In this document: piece after piece, positions 16,346-41,569 of the stretch | Numbering within the stretch: the first letter of the stretch is position 1 | How the letters are laid out: each line of letters opens with the position of its first letter | Assembly: GCA_900088475.1 (NCBI GenBank) | Contig: FLMG01003167.1 | Span: 1-41,569, forward strand | DNA from: Hyphochytrium catenoides | Lineage: Eukaryota; Protista; Hyphochytriomycota | Direction: 5' to 3' | Length of the DNA: 41,569 nucleotides | Notes under the pieces: generated by a model | The model's database searches: none | Told to the model about the DNA's origin: nothing | The model's input: the letters and a program-made list of their open reading frames with translations, nothing else | Translations under genes and position numbers: made by a program

Positions 16346-18944
16346 ATGGATTTGTATGGGGACCTCATTCCCAATCGCCCGGGCAAGTCTGGGTATAGCT
16401 TCTCCTTGGTGAAGTCTTCCGAAGGTAGCCAATCGGCGGCTTCCCCTACTGGGAAAGCAGAGGCATCCCCGAAAAATGATGATAAGAGCGGTCAAAGCCT
16501 AGGGGGCAACTCTGCGAAGAAGGCGCCGTTCCCAGGTCCTGGCGGAGGTGAGTCGGCAGTCACATGTCACTGTGAAGACCGCTAGGCATATGTAGCACTA
16601 GCTAAACTCTTCTCTATGCGTATGTAGGCTGGTCAAGAACAATGATTGCGCCCAGAATAGTTCGTCGGGATAACATGGGACCGAAGAAGGCCGCCAAGAA
16701 CGCTGCCTCTAGCGTATCCACTATCGCAAAGGTGAAGCTGGAGTTAGGGATCTATCCTCTCCACTTCAATTTCTGCCATCAATGCAAGCTCTTGGTCTTC
16801 TTTAGCTCGTGGGCTAGCTTTATATTCCTGCTGGGAAGCACTTTGTCCTGACCTTTTAGCTATCTTTTCTCTTGCTCTTGATTGTTCCTTTTATCCCCTG
16901 TATCTCCCATCTGCTGCGAATTGATGTGCTGCTCCATAGACTTCTTCGGTCGCTAGCCCTCAGAGCGCGGCATCCGCGGCTGCACCAAAGGTCAGGAAGC
17001 TCTCTTTGTCCATATACATAACGGCGATGGGTGCCATCTGATCCGCAACTAGGCTTTGTGATGACTTCTCCTTCTTCTCGTCTACTTTCTTTATATAAAG
17101 CTTTCTCACGCTTCTCCTTTGTTCCGGTTGTCGATGCTGCGCCACAGGCACCACAGCCTACCGCTTTTCGTACATCTACGGCTCCTGTTCTTGCTCAGGG
17201 CGTTGCATCATTCGCGGACGGTAGCTTGGTTGATGAGTACGATCCCGCGAAACCGAATGACTATGATGAATACTGCCAGGTATCACATGATGAGCATCTT
17301 CTTTCTCCTTATACCTAACACCATCTACCCGACGACTTATCAGGAGCGACAGAAGAAGCTTCAGGATGAGAAGAGACAACAGGACTTGCAAAGAGAATTT
17401 GAGGAGAATGCTCGACAGGTACGGCATCCACGGCGTCGTGCAGGAGAGTTTGCATTTGGCAGGTCTGGCGTACGACTAAAGGCTACATTGTACCTGTGCA
17501 GCGCCAAAAGGAGTTGGAACAGATCAAGAGAGCACGAGAGACGGGAGAAGCTGTGCCATATGTCCCAGCACCGGTTGGCAGAGGCCGGGGAAGGGGTATT
17601 GGTCTGACTATGCCCGCATGGATGACCAAGAAAGAGTAAGTTCCTATCTCACAAGGTCCTTGCGCAGCCCTTCGTCCTGCAGTCTTCGGTCGATGTAACT
17701 CTCTTTGACTTGTATCATTCACAGTCCAGGAAAGGAAGCTCCAAGCCCCGCACCTGCTCCTCAAACCTCACGTTCTGGTTCCTCCGAGGGCCAGTTCGAG
17801 GATGCTCCGAAAGGGTTGGGCTATGAGTCGCCCAAACGAAAGCCCGTGAAAGGTGGGGGACTGAGCCTTGGCGCGAAAATGCTGCAGAAGATGGGATACA
17901 AAGAAGACGAAGGTACCGAGCATTCTTTATCATCTTTTCGTACGTCACTCGAGGGAGTCTTTGACCATGTTTACTTCTTGCTACTTTCTGGGGCCTCGCT
18001 GTATCTTTCTTCTCTCTATCTTGTTCTAATGGGTCTCGCCCCTCTTTTTCGCCGGTCTTTGCCGTCCCTCTTCCGGACGGGTCTGAACAGGCATCGGACG
18101 GCGTCATACCCCAACCTCTTCATCTAGGGATGAGCTGAGGGACGATGATGTTGACAGCTCAAGGGTCATTCTGCTTCAGGTAAAGCTCACTTCAGCTCCA
18201 CAAGGTTGAGTACTTCTCTATTGAGCAGTAGCGATGCTAAAAGGTTGAACTCTCTGCGTCCATCCAGATGACACTTTTCTTCATTCGGTAGTTCGATACT
18301 GCTTACAGTCTAAGTTTCTTCTTTCTTCGTTGGGCCCTGCCTTCCCTCTATTTTTGGTTTCTGATTCTCGTCATGCCACCCAGAACATGGTAGACCCTGA
18401 TGAGGTAGACGACGAGTTAGAGGGAGAAGTGAGAGAGGAATGCAGAAAGTTTGGTGCTGTGGGCAGATGTGTCATCACCCAGAACAGATCTGCTAGACCT
18501 GAAGAAGCTGTTAGAATATTTGTCCAGTTCCACGATAGAGAATCAGCATTGAAAGGTGGGACTCAACAATCAAGGCTGTTCTGCGGCTGCGTTGAAGTGT
18601 GTACCCCAATGCTCCTCTTATTTTTCTATTATGAGACAAATCCAGCCTAACGGTCGGGCTGCTGGGCTGCCTGTTAGTTCCGTTCCGCTGTGCCACTGGT
18701 ATCCGACCTTTGGTGGGCAACCATACCCCAAATGGTGGTGAACCTTTTTTTTGCCGCCTCCGCTCTGTGCTTTGACGTGGTTTGCGTCGTATGAAGCGCT
18801 ACTATGCTAATGTCTGCTATCTCTTCACGATGCTTCCAATCAAATGCAGCCCACGCGCATTTAAACGGGCGCTTCTTTGGAGGCAGAAAAGTGAAGGCAT
18901 CCTTTTATAGCGAGCGGAAGTTTGACAGAGACCAGCTTTCGTAG
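16346..18944 (+). CDS. RBM17: Splicing factor 45 / DRT111-like protein (SPF45 motif, G-patch, C-terminal UHM/RRM), about 10 exons
   Basis: N-terminal MDLYGDL; SF45 motif [14 protein letters not shown]; GRGRG...MPAWM; G-patch-like [17 protein letters not shown]; [36 protein letters not shown]...EAVRIFVQF...[16 protein letters not shown]; stop TAG at 18942-18944. Confidence 0.93.
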
Positions 18945-23031: not shown

Positions 23032-26000
23032 CTAGCCTCTTGGCAAAATCTTTGTGCTGATCAGCTCTTGTGGTCCATGTCCTCCTGTTTTCACTGTGTT
23101 GTCGGCGGCTGAGTCCTCTGGTTCATACTCCACCTTATACTGCACACTAGACGATAGAGAAATAAAGCGTAGAGGAGAATATGCCAAGCCAACTAGGCTC
23201 TGAGCTGTGTAGAATAGGATGGTGAAGAGAGCGTCCAACGTCATACTCAAGGGAGAACGCTGAAGCAAAAGAAAGAAGACGTGTCGCTTCTCGTCTTCTC
23301 CAACATCAACTCCTGGGCGAGCTACCTCCAGAACCGTCGAAGGGGGACGAGGGTAACCGACTCCAGGGAGAATGAGGAAAAAGAGCCCGCAGTAGATTTC
23401 AACCATCAGTAACGCTGTCGTGTAGGGGACTAAGAGGCTTCTTCTCGAGACACCAAGCAGTAGGACCGTGTCCTGGAAGATGAGAGCTACGGAGACGGAA
23501 ATTCCAACGGAGACCATCAGCAGCCACCTGTGCGAGATAGACGAGGAGTGGGGGAAGACCATGGTTAGGGACGATATAACTTGCGCCACTACTATCAGAT
23601 ATCCAGGAATAATTATTAATGGGAAAGAGCGAGATCCCGTGAAAGAGGCCATTTTATGGGGGAAGAACCAAGGGGTCATTCCCGCAAAGTGTACCGGAAA
23701 ATGTTTGTTCGAGAGAGCACACTATTGAATGAGCTCAGTCGATGATGAGAGTAAACGGCGCAAAGACCACCGTGGGTCTCAGACGTCGGAAGAACAGACT
23801 GAGATATGTGTCAGCAAGTCATCAGAGGATGTCCAAGGGAGGAAGTAAAGGAGCAGCCGGCACTTCGTACCTCTCATCCCAATGCAGGAGCATTCCACTG
23901 ACGATAATGAACTCCACGAGAGAGAACATAACTATCCAGACGTCGAAGGAAGACAGGAGTCGAGCCAATAGCACTGGATGAGCTAGTGAGACGAGTAACA
24001 GATTTGTAAACAACGAGAGTGAGAAGAGCAGCAGGGAAGGTCCTGCTACTTGCTCTCTGTCAACGACTCCCGAGAGAATGAAACAATGCACGCAAAGGCA
24101 AGCGATTGTGGTGAGGATAAGGAAGGTCTCTTTGCCTGCCAGCCAGGGAGGCTCGGAAGAGCCTTGCTGCTTATTCACGGGAGACCCTATAATGTGCTCC
24201 TTTGCATCATCAGTCTGCAGTGGTGATGGTGTGATCTCGTCGCTTCGATGCGCAATAGAAGTTATGGTCGCTACTTTCTTGACTTCCTGTGCCATGTTGC
24301 TTCTCCCTTCCCGTACCCTGGCCTTCGCTCTAGCCCAGCGTTGTTTCATCCATCGAACGACAACTCTCCCAAGGTTATGATAGGCGTCCACACGAAACGG
24401 TTGAAGCTCTGCCTTAAGCTTATAAACCCTGCGGCCTCGGCGCCTAGGACGTTTATATAAAGTGACAAGATTAGTAAACCAATAACGGATGTGATGCAAC
24501 ATTGGCATCATCATGAGGTCAACAAAGATACCCGACCAGATGAGGAAGAATGATGGCCGCCGTGAACAGCTCAGACCGATTCAGGCGGCGCTGAGGAGGG
24601 GACGAGGAGGCACAGTGGCGAGCGAGAGGAATTAGAGTGATAAACAGAGCGAAAAGATCATCACTTACTGCTGCCGCCTAACCTCCTTCGCTCTCTTCGA
24701 CCCAATCTTCTCGGAGTCAACCGCCAGGCCAACCCTCCTTAAGCTCGTATTTTTCAGTGAATGACGGCGCGTCTGGGGCTCAACGCTTCTCCTATTCTCT
24801 GCTACAGCACCTAGGCGTATAGTCTCCTCCTTACTCATTCTCAGGACCTCTTTAGATGTTGAACATGACGCAGCAGCAACAGCAACCTTCGGTTCCTGAG
24901 CTTCTACACCTACTGCGGATTTGCTGACAACAACCACCGTCCCTAAGAGTTTGGCCCTCGTCCCAGTTATGTCTCCATTGCCTGCCACAACCCTCTTGGT
25001 GCTGTTGTCTCTATCATTCTTAGGTTCAGTGTTACACGGTATTGTTGCTTCAAGCTCCTCTTCCGTTCTAGTCCCTCGGTATGACTCTACTGGATCTTCT
25101 CGAACACTTGATGTCCCTGGTCCTCCTCCTATCTTTCTCTCGTCCCTCTGCTGTTCCATGCTCAGCGGCCACTTGATGTTTACAAAGTGCGACGTCCCTT
25201 TCTGAACACCTGCTGGTGGTCTAATCTTCTCTATACATTTCTTTAGCTGCTGACAATCCAGCAGCGCAATAACCAGAGTCGAGTCCGCTGCTATCAGCCA
25301 AGGCCTTACAGGGACGCGAAACAGAGTTATCTCTGTGGCCTCCATGAGTCCTTCATGGGGTGAGAGATACAGAATGTACGCTACCCTACATGATAAAGAC
25401 ATAGGGTTAGGGAGGGAGGAGTCATATGAGGACCCATGGCTATGGGACAGAGGGAAAGAGCTTGTGACTTCCACCACCAGCAACGCAAAGACATCGACGA
25501 TACAAGGCAGGGTGACGAAGCCAACTGGGAGAACAGGAAGAAGAGCGGTTATTAGAATGACGGGCACGTAGCTCATCATCTATGAAAAGATGCCAGACCA
25601 CCATCGGGTTTTACAAGGTTTTTTGAGGAGAGCTAGGATGTACCGCAGGAACAGGGCGATGGAAGTCGCAACTCCTATTAGAGCGATAACCGCGGTTGTC
25701 TTGTTAAGACCAATCGTAGGCATCGAGTCCATTAGCACCGGGTTCATAGCTCCCAGAAGGAAAGCCAGGACGTGAGCAACCGCACGGACGAGTTGTCCCT
25801 GGGAGCTAAAGTGATAACCGAAGAGGATCATACCTGGCAGGCTCTGGAACACAAAGAACCACACAGAGAACTGGCGGAACGTCCGTCGAAGTAGCCTGAG
25901 GTGGAGCTCGAGGACCAGTCCCATGCTATATATGGACATCCCTAGGGCCGTGGTATAGGATGCTAAAATTAGGCCGGGTCCCGCGTGCAGCTCTCTATGT

Positions 26001-26347
26001 TCCATGAGATAGAAAGCACCGATAAGAGCGAAGACGAGGCTGAGCCCGATAGTAAGGCCATAGAAAGGAGAATGAAGCATTCGATGGTACACTCGATGAG
26101 CTTTGCCTTGGAAGGCGATTTTGCTGACCGTCTGTCGAGCATCTAAACTTTCAGGAACATACTCAGGCGCCGGCTTGATCGTCCAGTACCTAACAGGTAA
26201 TATTAGAGACGGAACTGGTGGTCCTGGAAGGACTGCTGACGAGGAAGAGGGTCGTTGAAGGCTACTATGCGGTGTCGAAACATCATTGGCAGCAGCAGTA
26301 AGAGGAGAAGGTGGTGCAGAGACATCGCCCGATGGTCTCTCTGCCAT
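23032..26347 (-). CDS. Unknown ~12-TM (6+6) membrane protein, paralog A (829 aa)
   Basis: Exons 26347-25644, 25385-24669, 24443-23871 and 23527-23032 (sum 2490 nt, all introns phase 2, GT-AG). Shares YWTIKPAPEYVPESLD, PWLIAADS, HPVLLARLLSSFD, FQDTV and RSPLSMTLDA with paralogs B and C, and the first-half motifs with D. Confidence 0.88.
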
Positions 26348-26810
26348 AGCTTGGTTGCCTTAAAGCTGAGCAGGGAGTAGGAGGCAGGGCTGCTAAATCA
26401 CATACACCGTGCAGCCTATCGAACAAAAGGTCATTGCACCGCCCAAGACAAGAAGATTGCCCAGCCATAAGCAGCTGTTATGGCGCTTGCTCGTCTCACG
26501 CGGTACCCAGACGGCATTGGTCACCACTCATCAAGCTCTCCTTATGCGTAATGCCGTTTTCTGGCTACATCTGCTGAGACCAGCAGTGCCGTCCACGGCA
26601 GGAGGCAGGAATGAGCAGGGAGAAGGGGTAAACAGCTGCTGGGTGTACCTGTAGGGAGGAGGAGGAGGAGCTTGAGGTGCGGCGATTGGCCTCCAATAGC
26701 AGGTGAGAGGAGGAGGAGAATGAAGAGAACAGAGAGAGAAACTCAGGTGGAAAGGCAAACAACGCTGATGTAACGCTCATCACTCCTGGGGTAGCACTCG
26801 GGTGGTATCT

Positions 26811-26946
26811 NNNNNNNNNNNNNNNNNNNNNNNNNNNNNNNNNNNNNNNNNNNNNNNNNNNNNNNNNNNNNNNNNNNNNNNNNNNNNNNNNNNNNNNNNN
26901 NNNNNNNNNNNNNNNNNNNNNNNNNNNNNNNNNNNNNNNNNNNNNN
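26811..26946. other. Assembly gap (136 N)
   Basis: Run of N. Confidence 1.
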
Positions 26947-27122
26947 TTGTACCGTTGTTTTAGAAACTTTAGTGATGACCACCTTTACTTGACAATGCCT
27001 GAGGGCAGACCAACATAATAATAGAGGAAGATAGATATGTAAGGTCATCTTCATCTTGGGCAAGGATGAATTGATGATGTACATAGCTCAACGCTTATCG
27101 TGGGAACATCTCTTTCACGTAT

Positions 27123-28535
27123 CTAATTGCTGATTGAGACGCCAGCCGTCTCATTCCTCGGCCCCTCCAGGGACCACCATGTCTCTGCCAGATGGGAGAC
27201 GAAGCAAGGATGCAGTGCCAGCTCATCAAGAACACGCTTGAATAAGAGGCCCAAGTAGCTGGTCTTCAGCTGTGACAGTGTGTCACGAAGAGCTATCATC
27301 TGCTGGATCGATTGACAGGCGGCCAGATGATGACCTGGGATGATCCCGTCCGTGGTGGCTCCGGCACGGACCAGAACCTTCGCGATCTCGATATGTTGAT
27401 ACACAGCGGCCACATATAGCGCGGAGAGCCCTGCGTTGTCTCTCTTGTTCACTTCAACGCCCTTCTCATGACACAAAAGTCTCTTGATAAAGCCTAGACC
27501 CTCGGCGTAATGGGCTGTCACGATAAGAATGGAGCCTCCGCTAGGGACTGTCACATTAGGATCTGCTCCGTGCTCTAACAGTCGCTCTGCCACTTGCCAC
27601 TGGCCAAATTTGACAGCCGTATAAAGCGCAGGATAGGGCTGGTTGCCGTTGACATCTGCATTGTGCGCAAGCAGTGCCTCTATCACCTGCCAATTTCCAT
27701 AGCGTGCAGCATAATTAAGAGGAGGAGTCCCATCAAATGCCTCTTCAGAAGAAATAATAGGAGAATGGGTTGCACCGTTTTCTATTAGAAGGACCGCGAT
27801 GTCACTGTGGCCAGCCACGATAGCTTCGCATAGAGTTTCTCGGATCACTCTGGCTCTTATAGAGGCCAAGGGCTTCCCCACACGATCATGAGAAAGCCGT
27901 TGTGTCGAGGCCTGTTCCTCCTCCGTCCCTTTGTCTCCATCATCGTCCCCAAGATGGAGTAGTAGCTTCTGCACAAGCTTGCGCTCTTCACGTACGAGAG
28001 AATCCCAGATCGAGATCTGTAAGCTCCGACAACAAGTCCATTGGACCTTGGTCGGGCAAGTCGATTGCATTTCAAAGGAAGAGAGGAGGGACCGACAGAC
28101 TCCGTGGCAGACGAAGAGCACATGGCGTTGGTCCTCCGCTACCAAACTACTCTCTTTTCTCATTTCCAGCGGCCATCTGGTCTGGCCTCTCACCTCATCC
28201 GACTCTATGCGACCTGTAACTCCATCAACGAGAGAAGAAGGAATTTGGATCTCTACCAAGAGAGGGCCAGAGTCTTTCTCTTCCCCAGAGGACCTCTTTT
28301 TGCCGAAAGCTGTAAGGACCCAGCTGTTCTCCCCACTTATCATGTCTGTCGTAGCAGCATGTCCTGCTCCGATCATCTCGCCAGTAGGTGCAACAAAAGA
28401 AGAGGAGCCTTGGCTTCCTCTTTGTTGATCTAAGCTTTCTTTCAGCGATGATTGGGCACTCATGTCTCCTGAGGAGGCATAGAGATTGCACACAACAGAT
28501 AAAATCTGCCTCTGACGGCTACAAGATGGATGCAA
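27123..28535 (-). CDS. Intronless ankyrin-repeat protein (about 5 repeats) with an uncharacterised N-terminal region
   Basis: Uninterrupted 470-codon ORF; the true start may be the internal MSAQSS at ~28463. Ankyrin repeats TLCEAIVAGHSDIAVLLIENGA, GTPPLNYAARYGNWQVIEALLAHNADVN, PALYTAVKFGQWQVAERLLEHGADPN, GGSILIVTAHY...VEVN and GLSALYVAAVYQHIEIAKVLVRAGA. Confidence 0.92.
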   Translation of the reverse strand: MHPSCSRQRQILSVVCNLYASSGDMSAQSSLKESLDQQRGSQGSSSFVAPTGEMIGAGHAATTDMISGENSWVLTAFGKKRSSGEEKDSGPLLVEIQIPSSLVDGVTGRIESDEVRGQTRWPLEMRKESSLVAEDQRHVLFVCHGVCRSLLSSFEMQSTCPTKVQWTCCRSLQISIWDSLVREERKLVQKLLLHLGDDDGDKGTEEEQASTQRLSHDRVGKPLASIRARVIRETLCEAIVAGHSDIAVLLIENGATHSPIISSEEAFDGTPPLNYAARYGNWQVIEALLAHNADVNGNQPYPALYTAVKFGQWQVAERLLEHGADPNVTVPSGGSILIVTAHYAEGLGFIKRLLCHEKGVEVNKRDNAGLSALYVAAVYQHIEIAKVLVRAGATTDGIIPGHHLAACQSIQQMIALRDTLSQLKTSYLGLLFKRVLDELALHPCFVSHLAETWWSLEGPRNETAGVSISN

Positions 28536-29457
28536 ACCTCAAGAGAAGTTCTAGCTGAGTTGATAAAAGATGGTCTGGAGGCGACTCTCTGCAACAGCAG
28601 AAGACGACGCTATGACTTACTACTTCCACACAGCAGGAGAGCAAGGAAGAGTAGTCTTCCCACACTTTGGAGGGCTGTTAGATCTGACAGGTTGTCAGGT
28701 AGTAACGGTGGAACAGAATTTTCTTCATGGCGGCACCGTCGGACCAGAAGGGAAACAGCGGCTCCTTAAGCAAGTGAAACTAAGCCATGGGAAGAGGGCG
28801 GGGAGTAAATAACTCTGTCTCTTCGTACCCTGGCGCCGTCGTCTCTTGCTGGTGGTCTGCTTGTGGCAGTGACAGCTTTTGAAGGGAAGCACAGCTCCAA
28901 CAACATTTCATAATATGCTGGGACTACCAAGGAATAAGGACGCTGTCAGACGGTGCTGCTTGTTATTATAGATTCTCTCTGTCATCGATCATCGTCGAAA
29001 GAGAAAGAGAAAAAGATCTTGCTCTATGATGATAAGCAATAGAGACAACAGCCATCTTGCTGTGCTCAGTTACAAAGTTATAGCTTGCTTCTCTTCCTTT
29101 ATTTTATCGTTCTTTATGCCCTCTCTCTTTTACTTCTTGTTGTTGAGAGGAGGAGGGGAAGGAACGACTACGACTGCTACTGCTTCCTGCCTTTTTCAAC
29201 TCCTTGCAATTGTAAGTTCGCCAGCTGTGGCAGCAATAAGGAACCGCAGCAGCAGCAGAAGAGAGATAGAAGGACACCACCTTCACGCACTCTGCTGCCT
29301 GCGAGGGGAACGTCCGGAGGGAAGAGAGAGAAGAAGTTATTAGAGACCCTGCAGTAAGCTTGGGAGCAAAAAGGAGCATCATGACAACAGCAGCAGGGGA
29401 GGAGGGAGAAGAGAATAATAAGGAAAGGAGGGAAGTTCCGACGACGATGAGCCGCCC

Positions 29458-29726
29458 CATCAGCAAGGACAGTGAGGGCTGATCACAATGGCACAGAAGG
29501 AAGAGGAGGACGCAGCCGCCTTCGGACAGCGAGGTTCTTGGCTATGATCATCAGCAAGGACAGTTAGGGCTGATCACAATGGCACAGGAGGAAGAGAGGA
29601 CGCAGCCGCCTTCGGACAGCGAGGTTCTTGGCTATGATCATCAGCAAGGACAGTTAGGGCTGATCACAATGACACAGGAGGAAGAGGACGCAGCCGCCTT
29701 CGGACAGCGAGGTTCTTGGCTATGAT
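29458..29726. repeat. Minisatellite, three tandem copies of an 88-91 bp unit
   Basis: The unit CATCAGCAAGGACAGT(G/T)AGGGCTGATCACAATG...GGACGCAGCCGCCTTCGGACAGCGAGGTTCTTGGCTATGAT starts at 29458, 29549 and 29639. Length differences fall in the GA-rich middle. Confidence 0.97.
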
Positions 29727-30819
29727 AACAAGTCGCTAGCTATGGTTGGTGGGAGGAAGAGCGAAGCAGGAGGAGAGAGAGAGAGGAGGAACAAACACGC
29801 CCCCTGCTCCTAGGCCTACGGCATCCTTCCATGAACTAACACGTCTAACAACAACAACAACTGGTGCTTGTGGGAACAAGAAACAAGAGCCGTGGCGTCT
29901 GTGTTCCCCACGTATCAGAGTTTAAATTCCCCACGTGTCCCTTCCACCTTTCTCGCTTTGTCCGTTACAAGAAAGAAGCTATCTCTTCCAGGGCCTCCCC
30001 AGGCTATTGTGACAGGCTTATTGCCGCCTCTTCCTTCCTTTCTGCTAGGAAGCAAGGAGATGAGGTGAGCCTAACACTGACTAGGCTGTAGGGTGACAGC
30101 AGGCTGCGCAGTCGTCAGGGAAGAAGAAAGGAGGAGGTCAAGGGAAGAGGTGGAGCAGCTTCAGAGTGGAGGAGGTGAGAAGCGACGATACATAAGGTGC
30201 TAAGCCTTCCCACTCTCTACTGCGCCGTTGGTGGTGGGCACGCATGAAGCACACTCCATCCATTAGTAGGGTGAAGAATGAGGGGAACACTGGGGAAGGC
30301 AGCCAGGGAAAGTCAAGCAAAGAGAACAGCAAGTGGACTTCTTTACCGATAGGAGTCGGTGCTGACACTGATAAGGTGAAGTCTTTCAGCTACTGTTGGT
30401 GCTGGTAGCGCTTAATAGGAGGAAACAAGTTGATGTAGATGGGTGCATCAGGTTATCGACAAATTGAAGCGCTGGCCGCGTCTACTTCCTCTGACCGGAG
30501 CTGAAGTTAGAGCTCTTATAGATGTCTCCGAAGCCTTTTGACGTACCGCCTCAAAGGGTGGTGCGAAAGTCTAGCTGTTATCTGCTCTGGATGACTAGAC
30601 GCAGATGACGCTTCCACACCTAAATAACCGTTAGCTTCACAGCCCGGTGAGCCACCGTCCCGTCGGCTTTGTAGGAGGTGACCCACGGAGATGCCAATGC
30701 CTGTTGTTGTGCCTCTGCTTCTCATGGGCTGATGGTGCCAGACACCCCGAATGGATGGTAGCTATGGTCGAATCTTTGTGCTGCACCTATTCATCATCCA
30801 CTACCGATAGTACCTAAAA

Positions 30820-33363
30820 ATGACGCAATATTGGACGGTGAAGCCTGTCCCGGGATATCTGCCAGATATCCTGGACCCTCGGGAGTCCGTCGGTTCCCGC
30901 ATTCTTCCTAGCTGGGCCTTTAGCTTCTATACCAAGGTCCTCCGAAGGTCACGCCTCTACACTTTATTTATGTGCTCAACCCTGTTCGCAGGGATTATCA
31001 GCGCGTATATGATTTTTATTGACAGTGGATCGGCGCACTCTACGGAGAAAACAGCGACAGGTGTCATCACACTTATCGCCACTTGCTGCTATATTTTAGG
31101 ACAGGTTCCAGAGATTCAACTGCGGCTTCTCCGGAGATTATTGACACATTTTGAAGCCTGGTTCCTCATTATTCAGGCACTCATCCCCGCCATACTTCTG
31201 GGCTACGCCAATGCTTCTCGGGGTCATCATATCCGCGCCGCAGCCTTCGTCGCTGCGATTCTTAGTCAGCTATACGGAATCTTAGTGGTGGATCTACGTC
31301 CCCAGATTGAGGCTTCCAAAGTGTCTGTTGCCGTTGCCATGGTACTTGCCCTAGAAGCTATAGTGGCTCTTGTTTGGTAAGATCGTCTTCATTTCATATA
31401 ATCGTCAGCAGCAAGAGGAATGTGCCTTTTTACTTACTTGGTTATCTGTCTCTCTCTCTCCTATAACATCACCTCGGTCCTTTCCTGTCTGCCTCTCAAC
31501 CTGTTGGCTTCAGCTTACCCTTCAGAGTGCATGTGCGTTGTCTCTTGATGTAAGTTACCTGATTCCGCTTATTCTTTTGAAGAGTTTGGTTCATCTACCT
31601 TCTTAGTTCTCCAGCCATCTCCGAATATCCTCGGGTCAGCTGACACCATCTTCTTACCTTGTCTCTGTAGGATTGGTGGCAAGCTCTACTTAGACACTTA
31701 TGACGGCTTGAGAGAAACAGAGATGCAACTGTTTCAAGTCCCTATCCGTCCTTGGCTGATAGCCGCAGATTCTCTGTTCATCTCCGCTGCTCTTCATGCA
31801 CAACAGCTGACAAAGTATGTAGTTATGGTGCGGAGGTTCCGCACAGGGCAAGGATCCACTCCGTTAACTTTTGCAATGACAAGATGGCCTCTCATGATAG
31901 AGGAAGATCTTGCTACTTGGCATGACGAGGTGACAAACTTCAAACCTAGGGCCGCGGAAAGGACGCAGCAGAATGCCCAATGTCCCAAGTCAAGTGATAA
32001 AGAGAAAGAGTCACCACAGCATATACAAGTGGCGAGCCTTACTCTCCCGGGCCCGTTTCCGCCAGATCAAAGAAGCAGGTATTATGCTCTTCGGAAGAAT
32101 GATGAACGTAGGCAATCAGGCGTCCGTTCGTAAGGCTTTGCTGAGGGCCGGCGGATAGAGTAACGTCATGGGGTCTTTCATGCAAGTCTTGAGTTTTGCA
32201 AGTGGGCAAGCTCCCTAGCATGAGTAAAGACATTAGGAATGTCCGAAATGGCTGAGCGCTTAACCTCTGTCCTCTATAATGCAGGATACGCCGTGTGAAA
32301 GGCACCCGAAAGATCTATAGAATCCGACCGAAGCAGCCGGTGCTGGTGGGTCTCGATAGCTACGATGACATGCTAAGGCTGATCATAGAGAAGTTACAGC
32401 TATGGCGAAAGCGAGGCTCCTTCTCCTCAAGCAAACTGAGAAGCCAAAGAACTTGCCCCGCGTCTGAAGGAAATGACGAAGGTCATCGAAGAAGAGATGG
32501 CCAGAAGCAAGTGGCTGCCTGCTGGTGGGCATTTTGTGTGAGCAGAGAGCATTACCTCTCCTTCCTTGCTTTCTTTGGAGTCATTATGCAAGGCGTCGCC
32601 TTAGCCCTTGGTGGCCCTACCTTATGGCTAGCAGTAGGCCTTCTTTTAAGCTGCACGGGAAATCTACTGCTGATTCTTCGCGCTCATCCTCGGCTTGTCT
32701 GGAGACTTGTCACCTCGTTTGACTTCGTGGTGATCTTTCTCTCTTCAATGGAGTTCGTGACCTTCACCTGTATCTTGCTGGAATGGGATTTGAGGTAAGA
32801 TAAATCTTCCTTCCTTTCACATAAACCTCCTCGACTTGCCCGACTACAAGAATTCTCTTCACTGCCTCTCTCAAGCATCCATCTACTACATCGCTTAACC
32901 CCTAAGTACCTCCTTTGCCCACCCCATTTACAGGACTCTTGCCATGTTCTCCGTGCTCTTCACGGTCATAGCTTCTCTTACCATTCAGGATGCAGTCATC
33001 ATCAACCCGGCATGGCGGCGTCAACGCCTTTTGATCCTCCACTTGTTAGGGTTATTAGCGGTGGAGATCATTTGCGGTCTATCGCTAGTCTTTCTCACTC
33101 CAAAGAAGGCCTCCTCCTCCTCCTTGCCTTCGCTAACTGGGACAAAGACCTTAGAGGATATTATATATCGTTCTCCACTCAGTATGGGGTTAGACGCCTT
33201 AGCTACTGTCATCCTCTACACTGTTCGAAGCCTTTATAATGCGCTTCGGTCACCTCGTCGGCTGGTGGCAGTTCACTCAGATATTGAGTATGAGTTTGAC
33301 TACATCGAAGATCGGAAAGGAACCTCAAGAGTCCCAAACGCTGAAGACCAAGGCGGTAGCTGA
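30820..33363 (+). CDS. Unknown ~12-TM (6+6) membrane protein, paralog B (634 aa)
   Basis: Exons 30820-31376, 31671-32078, 32285-32794 and 32934-33363 (sum 1905 nt, all introns phase 2). Motifs YWTVKPVPGYLPDILD, PWLIAADS, HPRLVWRLVTSFD, IQDAV, RSPLSMGLDA and SDIEYE. Confidence 0.9.
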
Positions 33364-35220
33364 CATCTTTCCACTATAAAGCAGGCAGCAGGGTGCGGGA
33401 TATGCTCCACATAATGGAACCCTATAAGTCTTTTGTCACTGGCTTGCATCATAAAGCGACTCTTATCAGATATATATCTATAGCACTGCGTTGACGTCCA
33501 ACGTTTTTTCTGCAGAAGCTTCCTCCAGCACAACCATCATAAGTGCGCGGCTGCATCTCTTATTTTCTGGCGCATACTAAGGCGAGAGGTGCGGAAGAGA
33601 AACAGAAGCAGCGTCAACTGCCCATCACTGTGCTCCACAAAGAAAGAAGGGAGGCTGGCGTTATTCCTGTCTCTTGTTGTCAGAATTTGGATAGTCAACA
33701 ATAGTCACCGGGAGCCCTCGGTGTTGCTAGGATACTCATCACGCAAGAGGACGTCACAAGCGCAGCGGAGGGCTGCTAAGGTAGTCTGTGTAGCGGAGTG
33801 GATATCTTAAAGGGGAACCTTCATACCCAACTTCTGATCCTGCCCTAAGTTCTATCTGCCTCCAACAAATTCACTTCTATATCAACGACTACTCCTCATT
33901 GCCTCCTCATAGTGCCGAGATGCAAGATGAGGACCACCTGGAGCTTGAACATGGCAGCGACGACAATGGCTGGTTGCACCAGACAATAGGGCCAATGAAT
34001 AGGGAATCTGTGTCTTCGTCTTCAAGTACTAATAATGCAAAGCGCTGATGGTATGCAGTCAACCTCTCATTGTACCTAAAGCGCGCACGAAGATCTGTGG
34101 AGCTGCTCAAGCTGCAGCAGAGCTTCGTCCTCAGTCTTCAAGGTAGGCCCTTCCGCATCAGCATCAAGCTCAAGAAGAAGAAAGATGAGCGCTCTTCTAC
34201 ATTTCAAATATCTTTGTGATAACTGCAGGAAACCCCCTGGTTGGGTGGGCGAAGATAGGCCACCATCTCTGCGCAATAGATAATGAATGGCTTACAGCGC
34301 CGATGGGGGTGGGTAGGTCGATGAGGACGAGATAGATTGTCCCCCCCTCTGACGTGTAGACAAACCTTTAACCCCTCCAGCTACATCAGTAATTTAACGA
34401 GAAAGGTTCTTAATACGAATCATTGTAGGGGATGCTGATCAAGGATAGCACCCTTGTCCGTTACTGCATGAGAGGGCTGCAGCAGGTCCAGGAAGTGCGC
34501 CAGCAGTGCCGCTGCTGCGGAGAGCATTAGGATGAGCCTGGCGGCTCGGGTCTTGAGACACTTATCTTCTTTGTCTGTTCCCTCAGGATAATCCTCTAAC
34601 TTTTCCTCCCTCTCTCATGGTACTATGTGCCACTTCTCCAGCAGCGGTGATGACGCCCCCTGTTCTCACCGGCGAGGGAGGATGCTCATACATTGGGCAA
34701 ACAATCTGGCCGCAGAAGGCAAGGCGATCGTTGGATTGCGCTGACCCCATCTCCGCCCTCCGACCGACGAATGATTCTCCTTCTTTCCCCTCTCTCTTCT
34801 TCAGTGGTGAACTGCTGCTGATAGGTCAGCCGCCAATGACGGTGTACCCGCGGATGCTAGGTTACTAGAGGCTGCTAATGTTCTACCCCACGGAAAGGAC
34901 AAAGCTACTCGTAGTACCATCTGAACAATGACGCCGCCGTGGACGGAATAGGTCAGCCGTCCGTCATCAAATGCTGCCATAACATCAAGCAGTAGTGAGA
35001 CACGAGCTCATGATGGGCGAAGTTAGGGAAACTGCCATTTATCGCATTATTGTGAGATGACAATAACTACATTGCGGATGCTTGCCAAACTTCCAGGAGC
35101 CATGATGATGGTGATGAGATGAATGGTGAACACGGTTCTACTCCGCCGGTTGGACAGTAAAAAGGAGTAAAAGTGCGGTCAAGGAGTTAAAGGACCGGCT
35201 TGTGATAGTGTGACCAGGCG

Positions 35221-37696
35221 ATGGAGGATAACATTAAGGCATCAATGGGGACCACACCCGATCCTGGCCCATTTAAATCGTTGGATTGTGGGAGATTCTG
35301 GGTTTTGAAGCCCGTTCCTAATTATCTTCCGGATGTGATAGATCCTCGCTGCACGACTGGCGCCACCTTGCTGCCAGAAGCCATGATGACATTCTATGCA
35401 AAGTCATTGAAGAAGAATAGACTGTATCACCTGGTGACAGGCTTGGCTCTCGCCATCGGGTTACTCACCTGCCCATTTACTGTCTTGGACACAGAGGGTG
35501 CCGTAACCACAGTGTCTACAGCCCTAGGCACAGTCACGGCGACTTCAGTAATCTTCCTTACAATGTGTCAGGTACCAGACCTCCAGTTGCAGCTTCTTCA
35601 AAAGCTATTCTCGCAGTTTGAGGGATGGTACCTGGCGATGGAGTCTCTGCCTCCTTTGCTACTCTTTTCTATCTCAAGCAGTCGCAGGGGCCACTATGCC
35701 CGTGCCGCTGCTTTCTCTGCCTGCTGCATCTGTGTCATCTCTAGCATTTTTGCCATGGACTTACTACCGCAGTTGGTGCGCTCCAAGGTCATAATCTGCT
35801 TTGTGATACAGGGAAGTGTGGTCTGCTCACTCGCAATGCTCTGGTAAGAAGAATACCTTCCACTACCTTATGACCTGATCTGATGAGTATTGGGAGAAGA
35901 GAACCACATTCATTGTTGCTTATGCCCTGGGCCGTCACTTCTTCATCTTCAAACGTGCCAATCTCTGTTTGACCACACTGTTTACTCTTTGACTGCCAGT
36001 ATACAGCTATCCCTCTGTCTTCCGGATCATGGAACCTCGGTTGCCAACTTCAGCAATCCAGCCTTCCTTTTTCTTATGTATCGCAGTCTGACCGTGTCCC
36101 CTCTAACCCACCATCGTGTGCTGTAGGGTGGCTGGTCTACTCTATACTGATGCCTATGAAGGCATGGCGGTGACCCAGATCAATGTTTTCAACGTTTCCA
36201 TCCATCCGTGGCTCATCGCAGCAGATTCACTGGTCATCTTAGCCTTACTTTTGATGCGGCACCTAAAGCGGTATATCAACATGTTGCGTAAGCGTGAGGC
36301 AAGAGGAGGAGCGCTGCGATTCAATATTGTGACTTGGCCCTTGATGGTAGAGCTGGCACAGGAGAGGCCGCCAACCAAACTATTGGTAACTCCTCTATCT
36401 CAGAAGGATGTCGTCAGTAGTAAGGAAGATATCGGGAAATGTCGGGCGGTGGTAAAGAGCACTGAATTGGCCTCCGAGGAGGGTGTCACATCCGGAGGCC
36501 TGGAAGGGCAGCAATCAGCTTCCACCAGGTACGTAATAGCAAAGACTACAATGGAAGAGGGGCAAAGCCCTGTTAAAGCCCTTTTAATGCAGGTCTGAGA
36601 GTAAAAAGAGCAGTCGAAAGCTCTACAAGCTTCATCCTGTGCGAAGCAAGCCTGTCTTCCTTGACACTTTCGACGATATCCTAGGCTACCTGCATCGAAA
36701 GAGTTCCTTCTTTCAGGCCTGGAAGTGCCGATGGCCGACCTCAACTGACGGAGATGTCGGCATGAAGAATGAACAGGCAAATGAGCGACAAAGAGACGAA
36801 GGCGCTGAAGCTCGGCGCATGGAGCCGTTCTCCTTCCTTAACAACAACCAGTCATGTCCCATCGATATGCCCTTGAAGAAGCCCTTATTAGCAGGGCTTG
36901 AGCCAATGCTCTCTGCCATAGCGGTGATGGGGATCGCTCTTCAAGGGTTTACCGTTGCCTTCCAAACGTCAGAAGCCTGGATGGCGCTTTTCTTCTCCAT
37001 CACTTTTGTCGCTGACGTTTTACTCATGTCCCGATCGCACCCAAAACTTCTGCCAAAGCTAGTTCGTTCCTTCGACTTTATTGTCGTTGCTGCCTCTCTC
37101 TTGGAGTTCTTCATCTTCAGCGGCCTCTTGATGGGCTGGGATTATAGGTAGGTATATGTCCGTTTCTAGCTTGTTATTCCATTCTTCTGCCGCAACCTCT
37201 GATGATGCTTTGCAACTTCAAATCACTGCTTGTGGTCAGGGCTTTAATGGTCGCATCGCTTACAACCACCCTGGCATCATCAGTGATTATGCAGGACACT
37301 GTCCTAGTTACTCCTCCGACGCGAAGGAGACGCTGGCTGGTCCTTCATATGGTGGCCCTTCTCCTGATAGAGATCTCTTATGGCTGGTATATTATATTCC
37401 GCGCCTCCGCCAGCATCAAGCCCTGGCTGGAAGGTCCTCTCGCTAGTAGTATCGGGCGTTCTCCTCTCAACCTTGCGCTGGACGCCTTGGTCACTCTCAC
37501 GATTTACACAGTGAGAAGCCTTTATAATGCTGCAAAATCGCCCCACCTTTTGGTGGCCATAGTGTCGGATATCCAGTATGAGATTGTAAGCCTGGGCCGA
37601 CAGCCAACAGGGTGTCGGCAGCCAAAGGAGGAAGACAAAAACCTGATTAAACAAGCTGTAAGCAAGAAGCTCGCACCACTAGAGGAAGAAGAATGA
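35221..37696 (+). CDS. Unknown ~12-TM (6+6) membrane protein, paralog C (678 aa)
   Basis: Exons 35221-35843, 36127-36528, 36593-37147 and 37240-37696 (sum 2037 nt, all introns phase 2). Motifs FWVLKPVPNYLPDVID, PWLIAADS, HPKLLPKLVRSFD, MQDTV, RSPLNLALDA and SDIQYE. Confidence 0.9.
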
Positions 37697-38071
37697 TCAA
37701 GCATCGGTCTGGCCAATAAAAGAGGAAGAAAGGTGAACACCCATTGCATTGCCGTCCCTAATCTATAAATTCACGCTTGCCTTGGGACTTCGCACTTAAA
37801 GCTCATCATGTTCATACAATGTAATTCTTCCTTATGAATAGAATAGAAGTGAAGAAGGAGCGCGAGATTGCGCCCTCTACTTTTGGCCCCCATAAAGGCT
37901 CATATCAGAGCTGCCTCAATCATAAGAAAGAAGAAAGAACAGAGTCGACAGATCTGATTATGCAGGAACTTTCGCGGTGGGAAGAACTAGGGGCAGGTAT
38001 TAAGAGGCGCCCAATTATGTGTAGCAGACCAGCATAGGGCAAACACATTGCAGCCCCTCTTCTTTCGCCCC

Positions 38072-38845
38072 AAGACGGACAGTAATAGTCCACCTATCTT
38101 CTGCTGCGACTGGACTCACCAGCTGCAGAACAACAGGGTATCCTGAGCCATACTTCTGTCGTCTAGCGACAGAGGAACAGCCGATAGGAACAGGCATCCG
38201 ATTCCTATGGTGCAGACAACTGCATGGGATGTTCTAGTACTTACATTAAGAGCATGGGGAATGAGCTGCGGACGTCGAACAGAGTTGCCGGGCCAGCAAG
38301 GATGGGAAGGTCCTTCGCCAGGCACTCGGTTCTGGGTCATGAGTCACCTGATCTCCTTCCATCGTTCTATCAGGCTGCCATCGTGGCTCCCTCTTGTGAT
38401 CCTCTCTCCCCCCTTTTCCTCCTCTGCTCTTTCCTCTTTCCCTTTTCCTCTCCTCTTGTCTCTTTCCTCTCCTCTCTCCTCTCCTCTTTCCTCATCTCTG
38501 TCTCTTCTCGTCTCCCTTCTTCTTCCAAGCTCTCTGCTCCTGCCTCCTCCCTCCTCTGTAGCATTAGGTTGGGCCCATAAGTCTATCGTCATCTGGTTGA
38601 CGGGAGCTCTTTCCTTTCGCTCTCACTGTCCCGCTGCTGACAGATAAAGGATCAACATACACGTATCCGGCATTTATACCACACAGAATTCCATATTCCG
38701 GATCTCGAGCTCAGTTATCTAGGATAAATGATTTGGAGTGGCTGTGGGCCGTTACACGTTGGAACCCTCTCCTTTCCCTCTTCCAAAGCTCTAACCATCA
38801 CTTTCTTTCTCCTTCCTCGTCTTGCGCCCTTCTCTCTCCCGCGCC
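38072..38845 (+). repeat. Left arm of a long inverted repeat (mate 40794-41569+); outer boundary undetermined
   Basis: Its reverse complement aligns throughout with 40794-41569, with scattered substitutions and small indels (roughly 95% identity by eye). The match runs to the last base of the window. Confidence 0.95.
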
Positions 38846-40243
38846 CATAGGTCGTCGTACGCGTCCAGTACCAGGGGTTCTCCATGGCTTATCGGCTTTA
38901 GCTTGAATATCTTTCTTCTAAGGGTTGGCCGTGTGTAGCTCCTGACGTCATGAGCGAACGGGCTGCTTAGATATGCCAGAAGTTGGGATAATAGAAGGAC
39001 AAAGGACTCAAAATCCAACCCAATCAGCACATAATACCTGGAGTCTGCAACCGAAACCGTCGTGGTCATATCTTTCCTTCTGATTGCCTGGCCATGGTCT
39101 CCAGACACTTTGTGGAGGGCAGCTTCCTTGCCATTACTGCTGTCATTTGCTGCCGCCGCCGAAGCAGACCCGGTGTATGGTACGTAATAACAACGTCCTT
39201 CTTTAGTTCCCCACGCTGTCTGTCCTCCTATCTCCTCAATCATGAGTGGCCATTTCACGACGTTAAACCGCAGCGCACCGCCTTGCACTGCACGTTTGTG
39301 GGCCATGACGATGTACCTCTTGAAATGCCTCATAAGGATAATGGACATGACAAGCATACAATCTGCAGCTACCAGCCAGGGCCGAATAGGCACTCGCAGC
39401 AGAGTGAACTCGGTGTTCTCTATGCCCTCAAAAGCTCCCATATAAAATAAGCTTGCGACCCTGGAGATAGATGACGAGTTATAAGCCTGTGTAGCCTATT
39501 CGCTCACTCCTCGACGATGGTTTAGCAAAGCATATGTAGGACAAAGCAAAGGGAGGGATATCATCCTGACCCCCAAAAGGCAGCTAAGCGGGGAAAAGAC
39601 TGCAAGAAGAACAGCCTATCTTACCATAAAAGTCCCAAGACACAAAAGAAAGAGCCCTGTATGACCATGAAGACGAAGACCTTGGAGGACAGCATTTGCG
39701 GAAGCAGGTCTGCTGCCAACGCCCCGGATATTCCCGCAAGGCAAAAGACCATATACGAAGCTGCCCGTGCATGGTTTCCCCTGGAAATATTCCAATAGAC
39801 AAAGAGAAGCATCGGAGGGAGAGACTCTAACACCAGGAACCACCCTTCGAACTGCGAAAACATCTTGTGAAGAAGATGCATGTGAAGNNNNNNNNNNNNN
39901 NNNNNNNNNNNNNNNNNNNNNNNNNNNNNNNNNNNNNNNNNNNNAGGAAAAAGTTGATCACGCCCAAGGTAAGTGCCAACCAGCAAGAGACGCCGTACGC
40001 CCGGGACTTTCGAAGCTTTCTATAAAAAGTCATAACTTGGACTGAGAAGAATGCGGTTGCAGCAGTGTCCTTTGCATCGAGCTCGTCAGGAAAGTAAGCA
40101 GGGACGGCTTTTAATGTCCAATACCGCGGAAGGTCAGCCCCGTGGGTGGCGCATGGTGTTGTTATCCTATCACCGCCCCTTGGTGCCGTTGCTTCTTTTT
40201 CTTCCTCAATCTCACCTCCCGCATCGGCCCCAATCTCACCCAT
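38791..40243 (-). pseudogene. 3'-truncated paralog D of the 6+6 TM family (first 6-TM half only), fused to the inverted-repeat arm
   Basis: Exons 40243-39625 (contains the N gap), 39460-39038 and 38941-~38846, with the same phase-2 introns as A-C. Family similarity stops after ...KIFKLKP...PLVLDAYDDLW. The frame then reads 17 codons of repeat-derived sequence (AREREGRKTRKEKESDG) to TAG at 38793-38791. It could also be an expressed half-protein. Confidence 0.8.
39888..39944. other. Assembly gap (57 N) inside paralog D exon 1
   Basis: Run of N. Alignment to paralog C suggests about 105 nt are actually missing. Confidence 1.
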
Positions 40244-40793: not shown

Positions 40794-41569
40794 GGCGCGG
40801 GAGAGAGAAGGGCGCAAGACGAGGAAGGAGAAAGATAGTGATGGTTAGAGCTTTGGAAGAGGGAAAAGAGAGGGTTCCAACGTGTAACGCCCCACAGCCA
40901 CTCCAAATCAATTATCCTAGATAACTGAGCTCGAGATCTGGAATATGGATTTTTGTGTGTTATAAATGCCGGATACGTGTATATTGGTCCTTTATCTGTC
41001 AGCAGCGGGATAGTGAGAGCGAAAGGAAAGAGCTCCCGTCAACCAGATGACGATAGACTTATGGGCCCAACCTCTGCTACAGAGGAGGGAGGAGGCAGGA
41101 GCAGAGAGCTTGGAAGAAGAAGGGAGACGAGGAGAGACGACAGAGATGAGGAAAGAGGAGAGGAGAGAGGAGAGGAAAGAGACAAGAGGAGAGGAAAAGG
41201 GAAAGAGGAAAGAGGAGAGGAGGAAAGAGGGGAGAGAGGATCACAAGAGGGAGCCACGATGGCAGCCTGATAGAACGATGGAAGGAGATCAGGTGACTCA
41301 TGACCCAGAACCGAGTGCCTGGCGAAGGACCTTCCCATCCTTGCTGGCCCGGCAACTCTGTTCGACCTCCGCAGCTCATTCCCCATGCTCTTAATGTAAG
41401 TACTAGGAACATCCCATGCAGTTGTCTGCACCATAGGAATCGGATGCCTGTCCCTATCGGTTGTTCCTCTGTCGCTAGACGACAGAAGTATGGCTCAGGA
41501 TACCCTGTTGTTCTGCAGCTGGTGAGTCCAGTCGCAGCAGAAGATAGATGGACTATTACTGTCCGTCTT
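40794..41569 (-). repeat. Right arm of the long inverted repeat, upstream of paralog D, probably continuing past the window edge
   Basis: GGCGCGGGAGAGAGAAGGGCGCAAGACGAGG... at 40794 is the reverse complement of the sequence ending at 38845. The window end ...TATTACTGTCCGTCTT matches 38072 onward. Confidence 0.95.

Follow-up and report, generated by a model that had tools for sequence, protein, structure and literature searches.

Otopetrins consist of twelve helices forming two parallel six-helix domains in one chain, and two-pore channels have 2 × 6 helices, the six-helix channel units being either tandemly duplicated or dimerizing. In protists, unannotated families are common. The proteins described here, encoded within a window of 41,569 nt (the whole stretch of DNA analysed, which is a complete contig of Hyphochytrium catenoides), share the 6 + 6 helix organization with otopetrins (PF03189; PDB 6nf4, 6o84, 6nf6). 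They also resemble MFS proteins and ABC-exporter domains in having twelve predicted helices, arranged as six helices, a cytosolic linker and six further helices, and in having both termini inferred to lie in the cytosol. With voltage-gated-like channels, they have in common six-helix units, a conserved loop preceding the final helix of each unit and an F-D/E pair opening the third helix.

The locus contains three intact genes and one fragment:

23032-26347, minus strand: gene A, intact, delineated from ORF pieces, motifs, GT-AG phase-2 junctions and exon matches in its own genome; exons 26347-25644, 25385-24669, 24443-23871 and 23527-23032 (2490 nt including the stop, 829 codons)
30820-33363, plus strand: gene B, intact, delineated from ORF pieces, motifs, junctions and hydropathy helices; exons 30820-31376, 31671-32078, 32285-32794 and 32934-33363 (1905 nt, 634 codons plus stop)
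35221-37696, plus strand: gene C, intact, delineated from ORF pieces, motifs, junctions and hydropathy helices; exons 35221-35843, 36127-36528, 36593-37147 and 37240-37696 (2037 nt, 678 codons plus stop)
38794-40243, minus strand: gene D, a fragment, delineated from ORF pieces and the exon-1 and exon-2 alignments

Genes A, B and C comprise four exons and three introns apiece. All nine introns are of the GT-AG type, lie in phase 2 and occupy equivalent positions, and the summed exon lengths (2490, 1905 and 2037 nt) are each divisible by 3. Exon 1 of the paralogs is 34-36% identical to exon 1 of B, and the exon-2 alignment contains 16 invariant columns, including those of P-W-L-x-A-A-D and W-P-L. 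The nearest pair within the window is C and D (53% identity over exons 1 and 2), compared to 36-47% between C and B. The motifs of the N-terminal half are W-x3-P-x-P-x-Y before helix 1, F-E-x-W in helix 3, P-W-L-x-A-A-D in helix 6 and W-P-L after helix 6; those of the C-terminal half are S-F-D in helix 9, Q-D in helix 10 and R-S-P-L-S-x-x-L-D in helix 12. The set is complete in A, B and C, and D retains the motifs of its remaining part. The original prediction had described four paralogs at these places, with phase-2 introns at equivalent positions, intact frames in A, B and C, a common set of motifs, C and D as the closest pair and an architecture of about 12 transmembrane helices; the exon-1 identities and invariant exon-2 columns, the nine canonical junctions, the exon sums and the hydropathy profile (six helices, linker, six helices) agree with it on each of these points.

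By contrast, the family is not a local one of four members, as had been proposed. It has about 30 members genome-wide, and the present locus is one small array: each of the four exon probes matched 27-30 places in the 61-Mb genome, where members are arranged in tandem arrays, with 11 family genes on a single 63-kb contig. The copies on C3906 and C524 are 97% identical, and some near-identical copies may be haplotigs. The dN/dS ratio is 0.10-0.42 in every measurable pair, and substitutions at silent sites have reached saturation between the copies in the window, indicating that the family consists of old duplicates under purifying selection. These values contradict the suggestion that this locus shows the fast divergence characteristic of sensory families. 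It is hardly credible that the genes are non-functional, that is, decaying pseudogenes, mobile-element cargo or chance ORFs. Although D is truncated between inverted repeats and haplotigs might account for some of the near-identical copies (as with the 97% pair), the frames are intact, the splice junctions are in phase and of the canonical type, many pairs show dN/dS well below 1, AlphaFold confidence is high for helices 7-12, and the intron places are kept in ORFs from other samples, the Logan ORFs P0001-P0004 ending at the positions of introns 1 and 3 here.

Across the family, the proteins are 634-829 residues long. Hydropathy assigns 5, 1, 3 and 3 helices to exons 1-4, respectively, and the two resulting six-helix modules are joined by a long, variable, low-complexity linker. 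Each module is preceded by a conserved motif, R-Y-W-x3-P-x-P-x-Y...L-D ahead of helix 1 and R-x-x-Y-x3-P...L-D ahead of helix 7. Basic residues are concentrated before helix 1 (4.1 K+R versus 0.2 D+E) and in the loops that connect helices 2-3 and helices 8-9 (2.5 K+R and no D+E in the latter). This charge pattern suggests that the amino end of each module is cytosolic, and the motifs preceding helices 1 and 7 are inferred to lie on the same side. In both modules, a short amphipathic helix is located between the second and third helices and is followed by F-E/D at the opening of the third helix. Conserved polar and acidic columns are found at helix ends, namely, E and D in helices 3, 4 and 6, D in helix 9, Q-D in helix 10 and R-S-P-L-S...L-D in helix 12, and the conserved residues mostly occur near one or the other membrane face, not in the middle of the membrane. 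Such a placement would also agree with a role in gating, binding or interfacial catalysis. The helix 5-6 loop, which is predicted to be extracellular, is conserved.

The two modules agree in helix order and lengths. Profile comparison is suggestive of an internal duplication: the exon-1 profile matched the second half with an E-value of 0.054 over 29 columns, at the equivalent motif only, and profile comparison of exon 2 with the second half yielded nothing relevant. For the second half, a MAFFT alignment of whole exons 3 and 4 misplaced exon 3 on exon 4 and was discarded, whereas the trimmed pieces aligned correctly; a P0004-led alignment for helices 1-6 misplaced helices 4-5 and was set aside.

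Some features of this architecture would fit a receptor or sensor family, in which tandem multi-pass proteins detect environmental ligands and the linker and cytosolic motifs relay the signal. In chemosensory families, divergent multi-pass proteins are typically encoded in large tandem arrays, and the proteins studied here combine a conserved cytosolic motif ahead of each module with a long variable linker and a conserved extracellular helix 5-6 loop. However, this extracellular loop is the most conserved part, not the most variable one, dN/dS of 0.1-0.4 gives no sign of diversifying selection in the tested pieces, exon-by-exon Pfam searches found no signalling domain, and there was no fold match to seven-helix receptors among the VIA matches listed. 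Accordingly, we regard a sensory role as quite unlikely.

Sequence searches were run exon by exon. None of the A-D exons or P0001-P0012 matched Pfam at E-values up to 1, and no exon matched NCBIfam or PDB sequences. When a 20-sequence profile was compared to 1.84 billion proteins, only 11 hits were obtained, all unnamed or labelled 'hypothetical', with no named NCBI or UniRef record among them. Word searches with P0004, P0008 and the trimmed second-half alignment returned the query itself or nothing, the ESM Atlas yielded only unnamed eukaryote clusters, with low recognition, and we found no description of the family in the literature. The suggested link to oomycete transmembrane proteins finds no support among the 11 hits, whereas the absence of an MFS, ABC or other known-family signature holds across Pfam, NCBIfam, PDB, Foldseek and VIA-align.

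Some of the 11 hits are distant relatives with one or two modules. These sequences come from JGI metagenomes (P0006, P0008), Logan assemblies (P0009, P0010) and ENA (P0011/P0012) and are annotated as 'hypothetical proteins'. Like the family, all of them contain a six-helix module in which the third helix carries a motif of the L-L-x-x-F-E-F-W type and the fourth is followed by D-x-x-P. In P0008, the L-P-x-V-I-D-P-R-x-T stretch before helix 1 is also preserved, and hhalign matched this protein to the exon-1 profile with a probability of 89% (E-value of 2e-6, 146 columns). Unlike the family, P0010 has a single module (315 aa), P0006, P0008 and P0009 carry two N-like modules, and in P0006 and P0008-P0012 the diverged C-module is missing and the linkers are short; these proteins also lack a Pfam domain.

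Helices 7-12 were modelled separately with AlphaFold (pTM of 0.71), and pLDDT exceeds 90 for most of the helical part. In helix order and lengths, the single-module relative P0010 agrees with this model. Comparison of the model with the PDB using Foldseek and VIA-align revealed no fold above the helical-bundle background. The top Foldseek rows were voltage-gated-like channels (E-values of 0.47-2.7, TM-scores of at most 0.26), none of them significant. The otopetrin entries are among the few PDB structures that align with the model over its full set of six helices; nevertheless, the superposition is no better than the helical-bundle background and neither the A-D exons nor P0001-P0012 match PF03189, and the otopetrin assignment was rejected. 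A voltage-gated or two-pore channel assignment was likewise rejected as background, given the low TM-scores (≤0.26) and the lack of any such channel in the VIA top 50. Unlike voltage-gated-like channels, the family has no Arg/Lys ladder in the fourth helix and no filter signature; the aligned fourth and tenth helices, as read from the alignments, contain at most one basic residue, and there is no Ion_trans (PF00520) match for any A-D exon or P0001-P0012. MFS proteins were found neither by Pfam profiles nor, as chains, among the VIA matches listed, and their loop 2-3 motif is absent. With respect to ABC exporters, the linker and tail are of low complexity, ABC_tran was not matched, and there is neither a nucleotide-binding domain nor a fold match. 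Cation diffusion facilitators (ZnT/YiiP) were matched neither by the Cation_efflux profile nor by their six-helix fold. It is unlikely that the family belongs to a known 6 + 6 or six-helix family (otopetrin-like, two-pore/voltage-gated-like or CDF/ZnT-type) from which it has diverged beyond the reach of the tools used.

As judged from the sequences, these appear to be lineage-restricted, polytopic membrane proteins, for which we favour a function as a cation channel or transporter, with a probability of roughly 0.45, because acidic and polar residues are conserved at helix ends and the two modules are parallel. No match to transporter or channel families was obtained by sequence (Pfam, NCBIfam) or by fold (Foldseek, VIA-align). 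Under the proposed mechanism, the two modules of one chain, or a pair of single-module subunits in the distant relatives, would surround a polar pathway whose lining consists of the acidic and polar residues conserved at the helix ends, and cations or small solutes might be conducted through it in the manner of a channel or a secondary transporter. The linker could act as a regulatory region, and expansion of the family would yield copies differing in substrate, location or regulation. The same helix-end residues could instead belong to a membrane-embedded enzyme or a lipid-handling protein (a scramblase, a transferase or a factor shaping the wall or membrane) with an active site at the cytosolic face, since the conserved columns with E, H/Q, F-E/D, D-x-x-P, Q-D and R are concentrated at helix ends predicted to be cytosolic and the host is an osmotrophic, wall-building 'pseudofungus'. 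Yet the His positions are only partly conserved (in about 13 of the 20 N-module sequences, as read from alignment rows), no enzyme family was matched by sequence or fold, and thirty copies would be unusual for a housekeeping enzyme, so that this alternative seems very unlikely. Within the channel or transporter reading, a more far-reaching and rather doubtful possibility is that the family constitutes a new class of membrane transport proteins, built on a six-helix module with a fold absent from the Protein Data Bank, the module operating in tandem in the present proteins and as a dimer where relatives have only one. On this view, the family would be confined to hyphochytrids and a small number of unsampled protists and would have expanded to about 30 copies in the genome studied here.

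If the family truly has no known relatives, it would provide a new six-helix membrane module for a barely studied branch of eukaryotes and, probably, also a new type of channel or transporter. The approximately 30 constrained tandem copies suggest that the family is important to the way in which this osmotrophic 'pseudofungus' interacts with its environment. With a confident AlphaFold model and a single-module relative as short as P0010 (315 aa), expression, recording and structure solution become practical. The value of the family lies in a well-defined target rather than in a demonstrated mechanism.

Gene D, the two assembly gaps and the inverted repeat are organized as follows:

40243-39945 and, beyond a gap, 39887 to about 39625, minus strand: exon 1 of gene D, from ORF pieces
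39495-38794, minus strand: single ORF of gene D that spans exon 2 together with the linker and second cytosolic motif, followed by a stop
39888-39944: assembly gap in exon 1 of D, between helix 1 and the amphipathic helix
38072-38845: left arm of the inverted repeat flanking D, within which the end of the D ORF (38794) falls
40794-41569: right arm of the inverted repeat, reaching the contig end
26811-26946: intergenic assembly gap upstream of gene A, outside all family coding sequence

In this assembly D is truncated, as noted in the original prediction: its ORF stops after the second cytosolic motif and helices 7-12 are missing, own-genome exon searches having detected neither an exon-3 helix region nor an exon-4 match downstream. 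The arms of the inverted repeat measure about 775 nt, and, with the exception of one short pair, the repeat pairs are 90-99% complementary. Either a rearrangement or an artefact of the assembly could account for the truncation. At the gap in exon 1, two bases are left over on the 5' flank and the 3' flank begins with a codon start, so that the 57 N break the frame; judging by the family alignment, about 35 residues (approximately 105 nt) are missing. The real gap is probably longer than 57 nt. The second gap (26811-26946) sits between the ATG of A (26347) and an ankyrin ORF (27126-28538) and, consequently, affects no coding sequence of the family.

Genes A to D belong to a real family of membrane proteins, built of 2 x 6 helices, that is under constraint and has expanded; relatives are undetectable in Pfam, NCBIfam and PDB and nearly absent from public protein data. 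Stop-to-stop ORFs and translations of contig C2381, which the window covers in full and which is one record of the 61.0-Mb assembly (4,759 records; the published assembly is given as comprising 4,758 scaffolds (≥1 kb) plus the mitochondrial genome, 65.7 Mbp; Leonard et al., 2018, PMC5795050), confirmed the positions of all four related genes in the original prediction, and every motif that it listed is present. Three have four exons each:

23032-26347, minus strand: gene A, exons 26347-25644 (ATG at 26347), 25385-24669, 24443-23871 and 23527-23032 (sum 2490 nt)
30820-33363, plus strand: gene B, exons 30820-31376, 31671-32078, 32285-32794 and 32934-33363 (sum 1905 nt)
35221-37696, plus strand: gene C, exons 35221-35843, 36127-36528, 36593-37147 and 37240-37696 (sum 2037 nt)

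All three exon sums are divisible by three. As predicted, the introns of A, B and C occupy equivalent positions and are in phase 2; all are GT-AG and interrupt a TGG, AGG, CGG or CAG codon between its second and third bases. Three introns per gene is consistent with the 3.64 reported for H. catenoides genes (Leonard et al., 2018, PMC5795050), an article in which the terms looked up yielded no mention of the family. The other exon-1 pieces are 34-36% identical to that of B, and 16 columns are invariant in the exon-2 alignment, including P-W-L-x-A-A-D and W-P-L.

The family had been described as four-membered, but genome-wide the probes from exons 1, 2, 3 and 4 give 30, 28, 29 and 27 matching loci, respectively, spread over at least 17 contigs; a few of these loci are nearly identical and may be haplotigs. 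The main array, on contig C524 (63 kb, 1-63454; loci L003-L015, L032-L043 and L060-L072), holds about 11 family genes on both strands, as counted from strand and order. One C524 copy lacks intron 3 (L038:1441-2379, minus strand; G000:C524 ~61881-62819), so that helices 7-12, the whole second module, lie in one 313-residue ORF. Contig C3906 carries a piece 97% identical to this copy, which may be its haplotig. Long CT/GA microsatellites, several with short N gaps, flank the family copies at L021 (C685) and L087 (C2282); they translate as S-L-S-L or E-R-E-R and sometimes lie inside the ORFs of family members.

Exon-by-exon Nei-Gojobori estimates do not bear out the suggestion of a fast-evolving sensory family. 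A young pair within the C524 array (89% protein identity) has dS 0.30 and dN/dS 0.19 over exons 1 and 2, two younger pairs have dS 0.06-0.14 and dN/dS 0.33-0.42, and the older pairs still estimable fall at dN/dS 0.10-0.23. Across the whole range of 0.10-0.42, nothing points to fast, adaptive divergence. The window copies have reached saturation at silent sites (pS 0.75-0.81), with pN 0.27-0.44; these copies are old duplicates under purifying selection. Non-functional DNA is a very improbable explanation of such loci, and a receptor role is improbable.

Kyte-Doolittle windows place five, one, three and three helices in exons 1 to 4, giving six helices, a long hydrophilic low-complexity linker and six more helices. 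The segment preceding helix 1 is basic (K+R 4.1 versus D+E 0.2), as are loops 2-3 and 8-9, whereas loops 1-2 and 7-8 are not. This charge pattern predicts a cytosolic location for both termini, for the linker and for the conserved motif ahead of each module. The conserved columns are concentrated at the ends of helices:

N-module (helices 1-6): E before the amphipathic helix, Q-F-E at helix 3, D-x-x-P after helix 4, K at helix 5
Helix 5-6 loop and helix 6: Y...Y-E-G...V-P-x-R-P-W-L-x-A-A-D, then F-x-x-I-K-W-P-L
Helix 9: R-x-H-P-x-L-L and S-F-D
Helix 10: Q-D
Helix 12: R-S-P-L-S-x-x-L-D

Individual exons, or ORFs that are naturally uninterrupted, served as input to all searches and folds. Pfam gave no match at E ≤1 to any exon of A-D, and the NCBIfam and PDB sequence searches likewise returned none, so that the family remains unrecognised, as originally proposed. 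A HMMER search of 1.84 billion representative proteins with an exon-1 profile built from 20 sequences retrieved 11 proteins at E ≤1e-3 (4 at E ≤1e-10). All are unnamed or 'hypothetical' products of Logan, JGI or ENA assemblies, and none carries a Pfam domain. Among the related proteins, P0001-P0003 resemble exon 1 and end at the position of intron 1, and P0004 (800 aa) spans exons 1-3 and ends at that of intron 3, providing indirect support for splicing, with intron places kept in other samples. Among distant relatives, P0010 (315 aa) is a single six-helix module, and P0006, P0008 and P0009 each have two modules, both N-module-like (exon-1 profile versus P0008 by hhalign: probability 89%, E 2e-6, 146 columns). 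No further relatives emerged from word searches that used P0004, P0008 or the second-half alignment as query, and the ESM Atlas search returned unnamed clusters only.

The two halves of the window proteins likely arose by internal duplication. Both share a helix pattern, each is preceded by a similar motif, and P-E-x-H-x-x-L-L-x-x-L-F-x-Q-F-E-x-W in one half corresponds in position to H-P-x-L-L-x-x-L-x-x-S-F-D in the other; the existence of one-module and two-N-module relatives makes such an origin plausible. However, when the halves are compared by profile, only 29 columns align (E 0.054), and exon 2 has no match in the second half. The halves of P0008 (JGI metagenome protein, 644 aa) are very similar, and each opens on a segment resembling a coiled coil (weak K-box and bZIP-type matches); this protein appears to have duplicated internally in recent times, in contrast to the window genes, for which an old duplication is proposed.

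The second module, folded from the intron-less C524 ORF with a checked 51-row alignment, gave a model with mean pLDDT 77.9 and pTM 0.71 (pLDDT >90 across most of the helix region). Foldseek found no PDB match for it (best E 0.47, TM-score ~0.2). Judged by sequence and by the predicted fold of the second module, the family is unmatched at the family (Pfam, NCBIfam) and fold (PDB) levels; that it belongs to a known family, as an outlier too divergent for these tools to reach, is unlikely. Voltage-gated-type channels topped both Foldseek lists but were non-significant, and are absent from the top 50 of the VIA-align search. Given two parallel modules, single-module relatives that would need pairing, and acidic and polar residues conserved at either face of the membrane, the proteins would putatively act as channels or transporters of cations or small solutes (probability about 0.45). 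An interfacial enzyme or lipid-handling protein, to which conserved residues at helix ends might also be assigned, is doubtful.

The fragmentary state of gene D may be genuine or may stem from mis-assembly. The relevant features are:

26811-26946: assembly gap upstream of the ATG of A, before the ankyrin-repeat ORF; touches no family coding sequence
38072-38845 and 40794-41569: left and right arms of a ~775-nt inverted repeat, 90-99% complementary, enclosing D
38794-39495, minus strand: ORF of D with exon 2, linker and second cytosolic motif in one open frame; stop at 38794
39888-39944: assembly gap within exon 1 of D

With exon 2 through the second motif in one frame, intron 2 of D is either absent or retained in frame. 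Taken as 57 N, the gap in exon 1 leaves its two flanks one base out of frame, and about 35 residues are absent there relative to the family alignment; its true length probably exceeds 57 N. Exon-probe searches found no coding sequence for helices 7-12 downstream of D, the stop of which falls within the left repeat arm. The right arm finishes exactly at the contig end, making a fold-back assembly artefact possible.

A 471-codon ankyrin-repeat ORF between A and B has no obvious connection with the family. Long ORFs in the first 22 kb gave no family hits other than weak Pfam matches upstream of the cluster. The ORFs concerned are:

27126-28538, minus strand: ankyrin-repeat ORF between A and B with strong matches (Ank_2, E 1e-19)
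6629-7090, plus strand: ORF weakly matching Ephrin_rec_like (E 2e-5)
17705-18127, plus strand: ORF weakly matching G-patch (E 3e-4)
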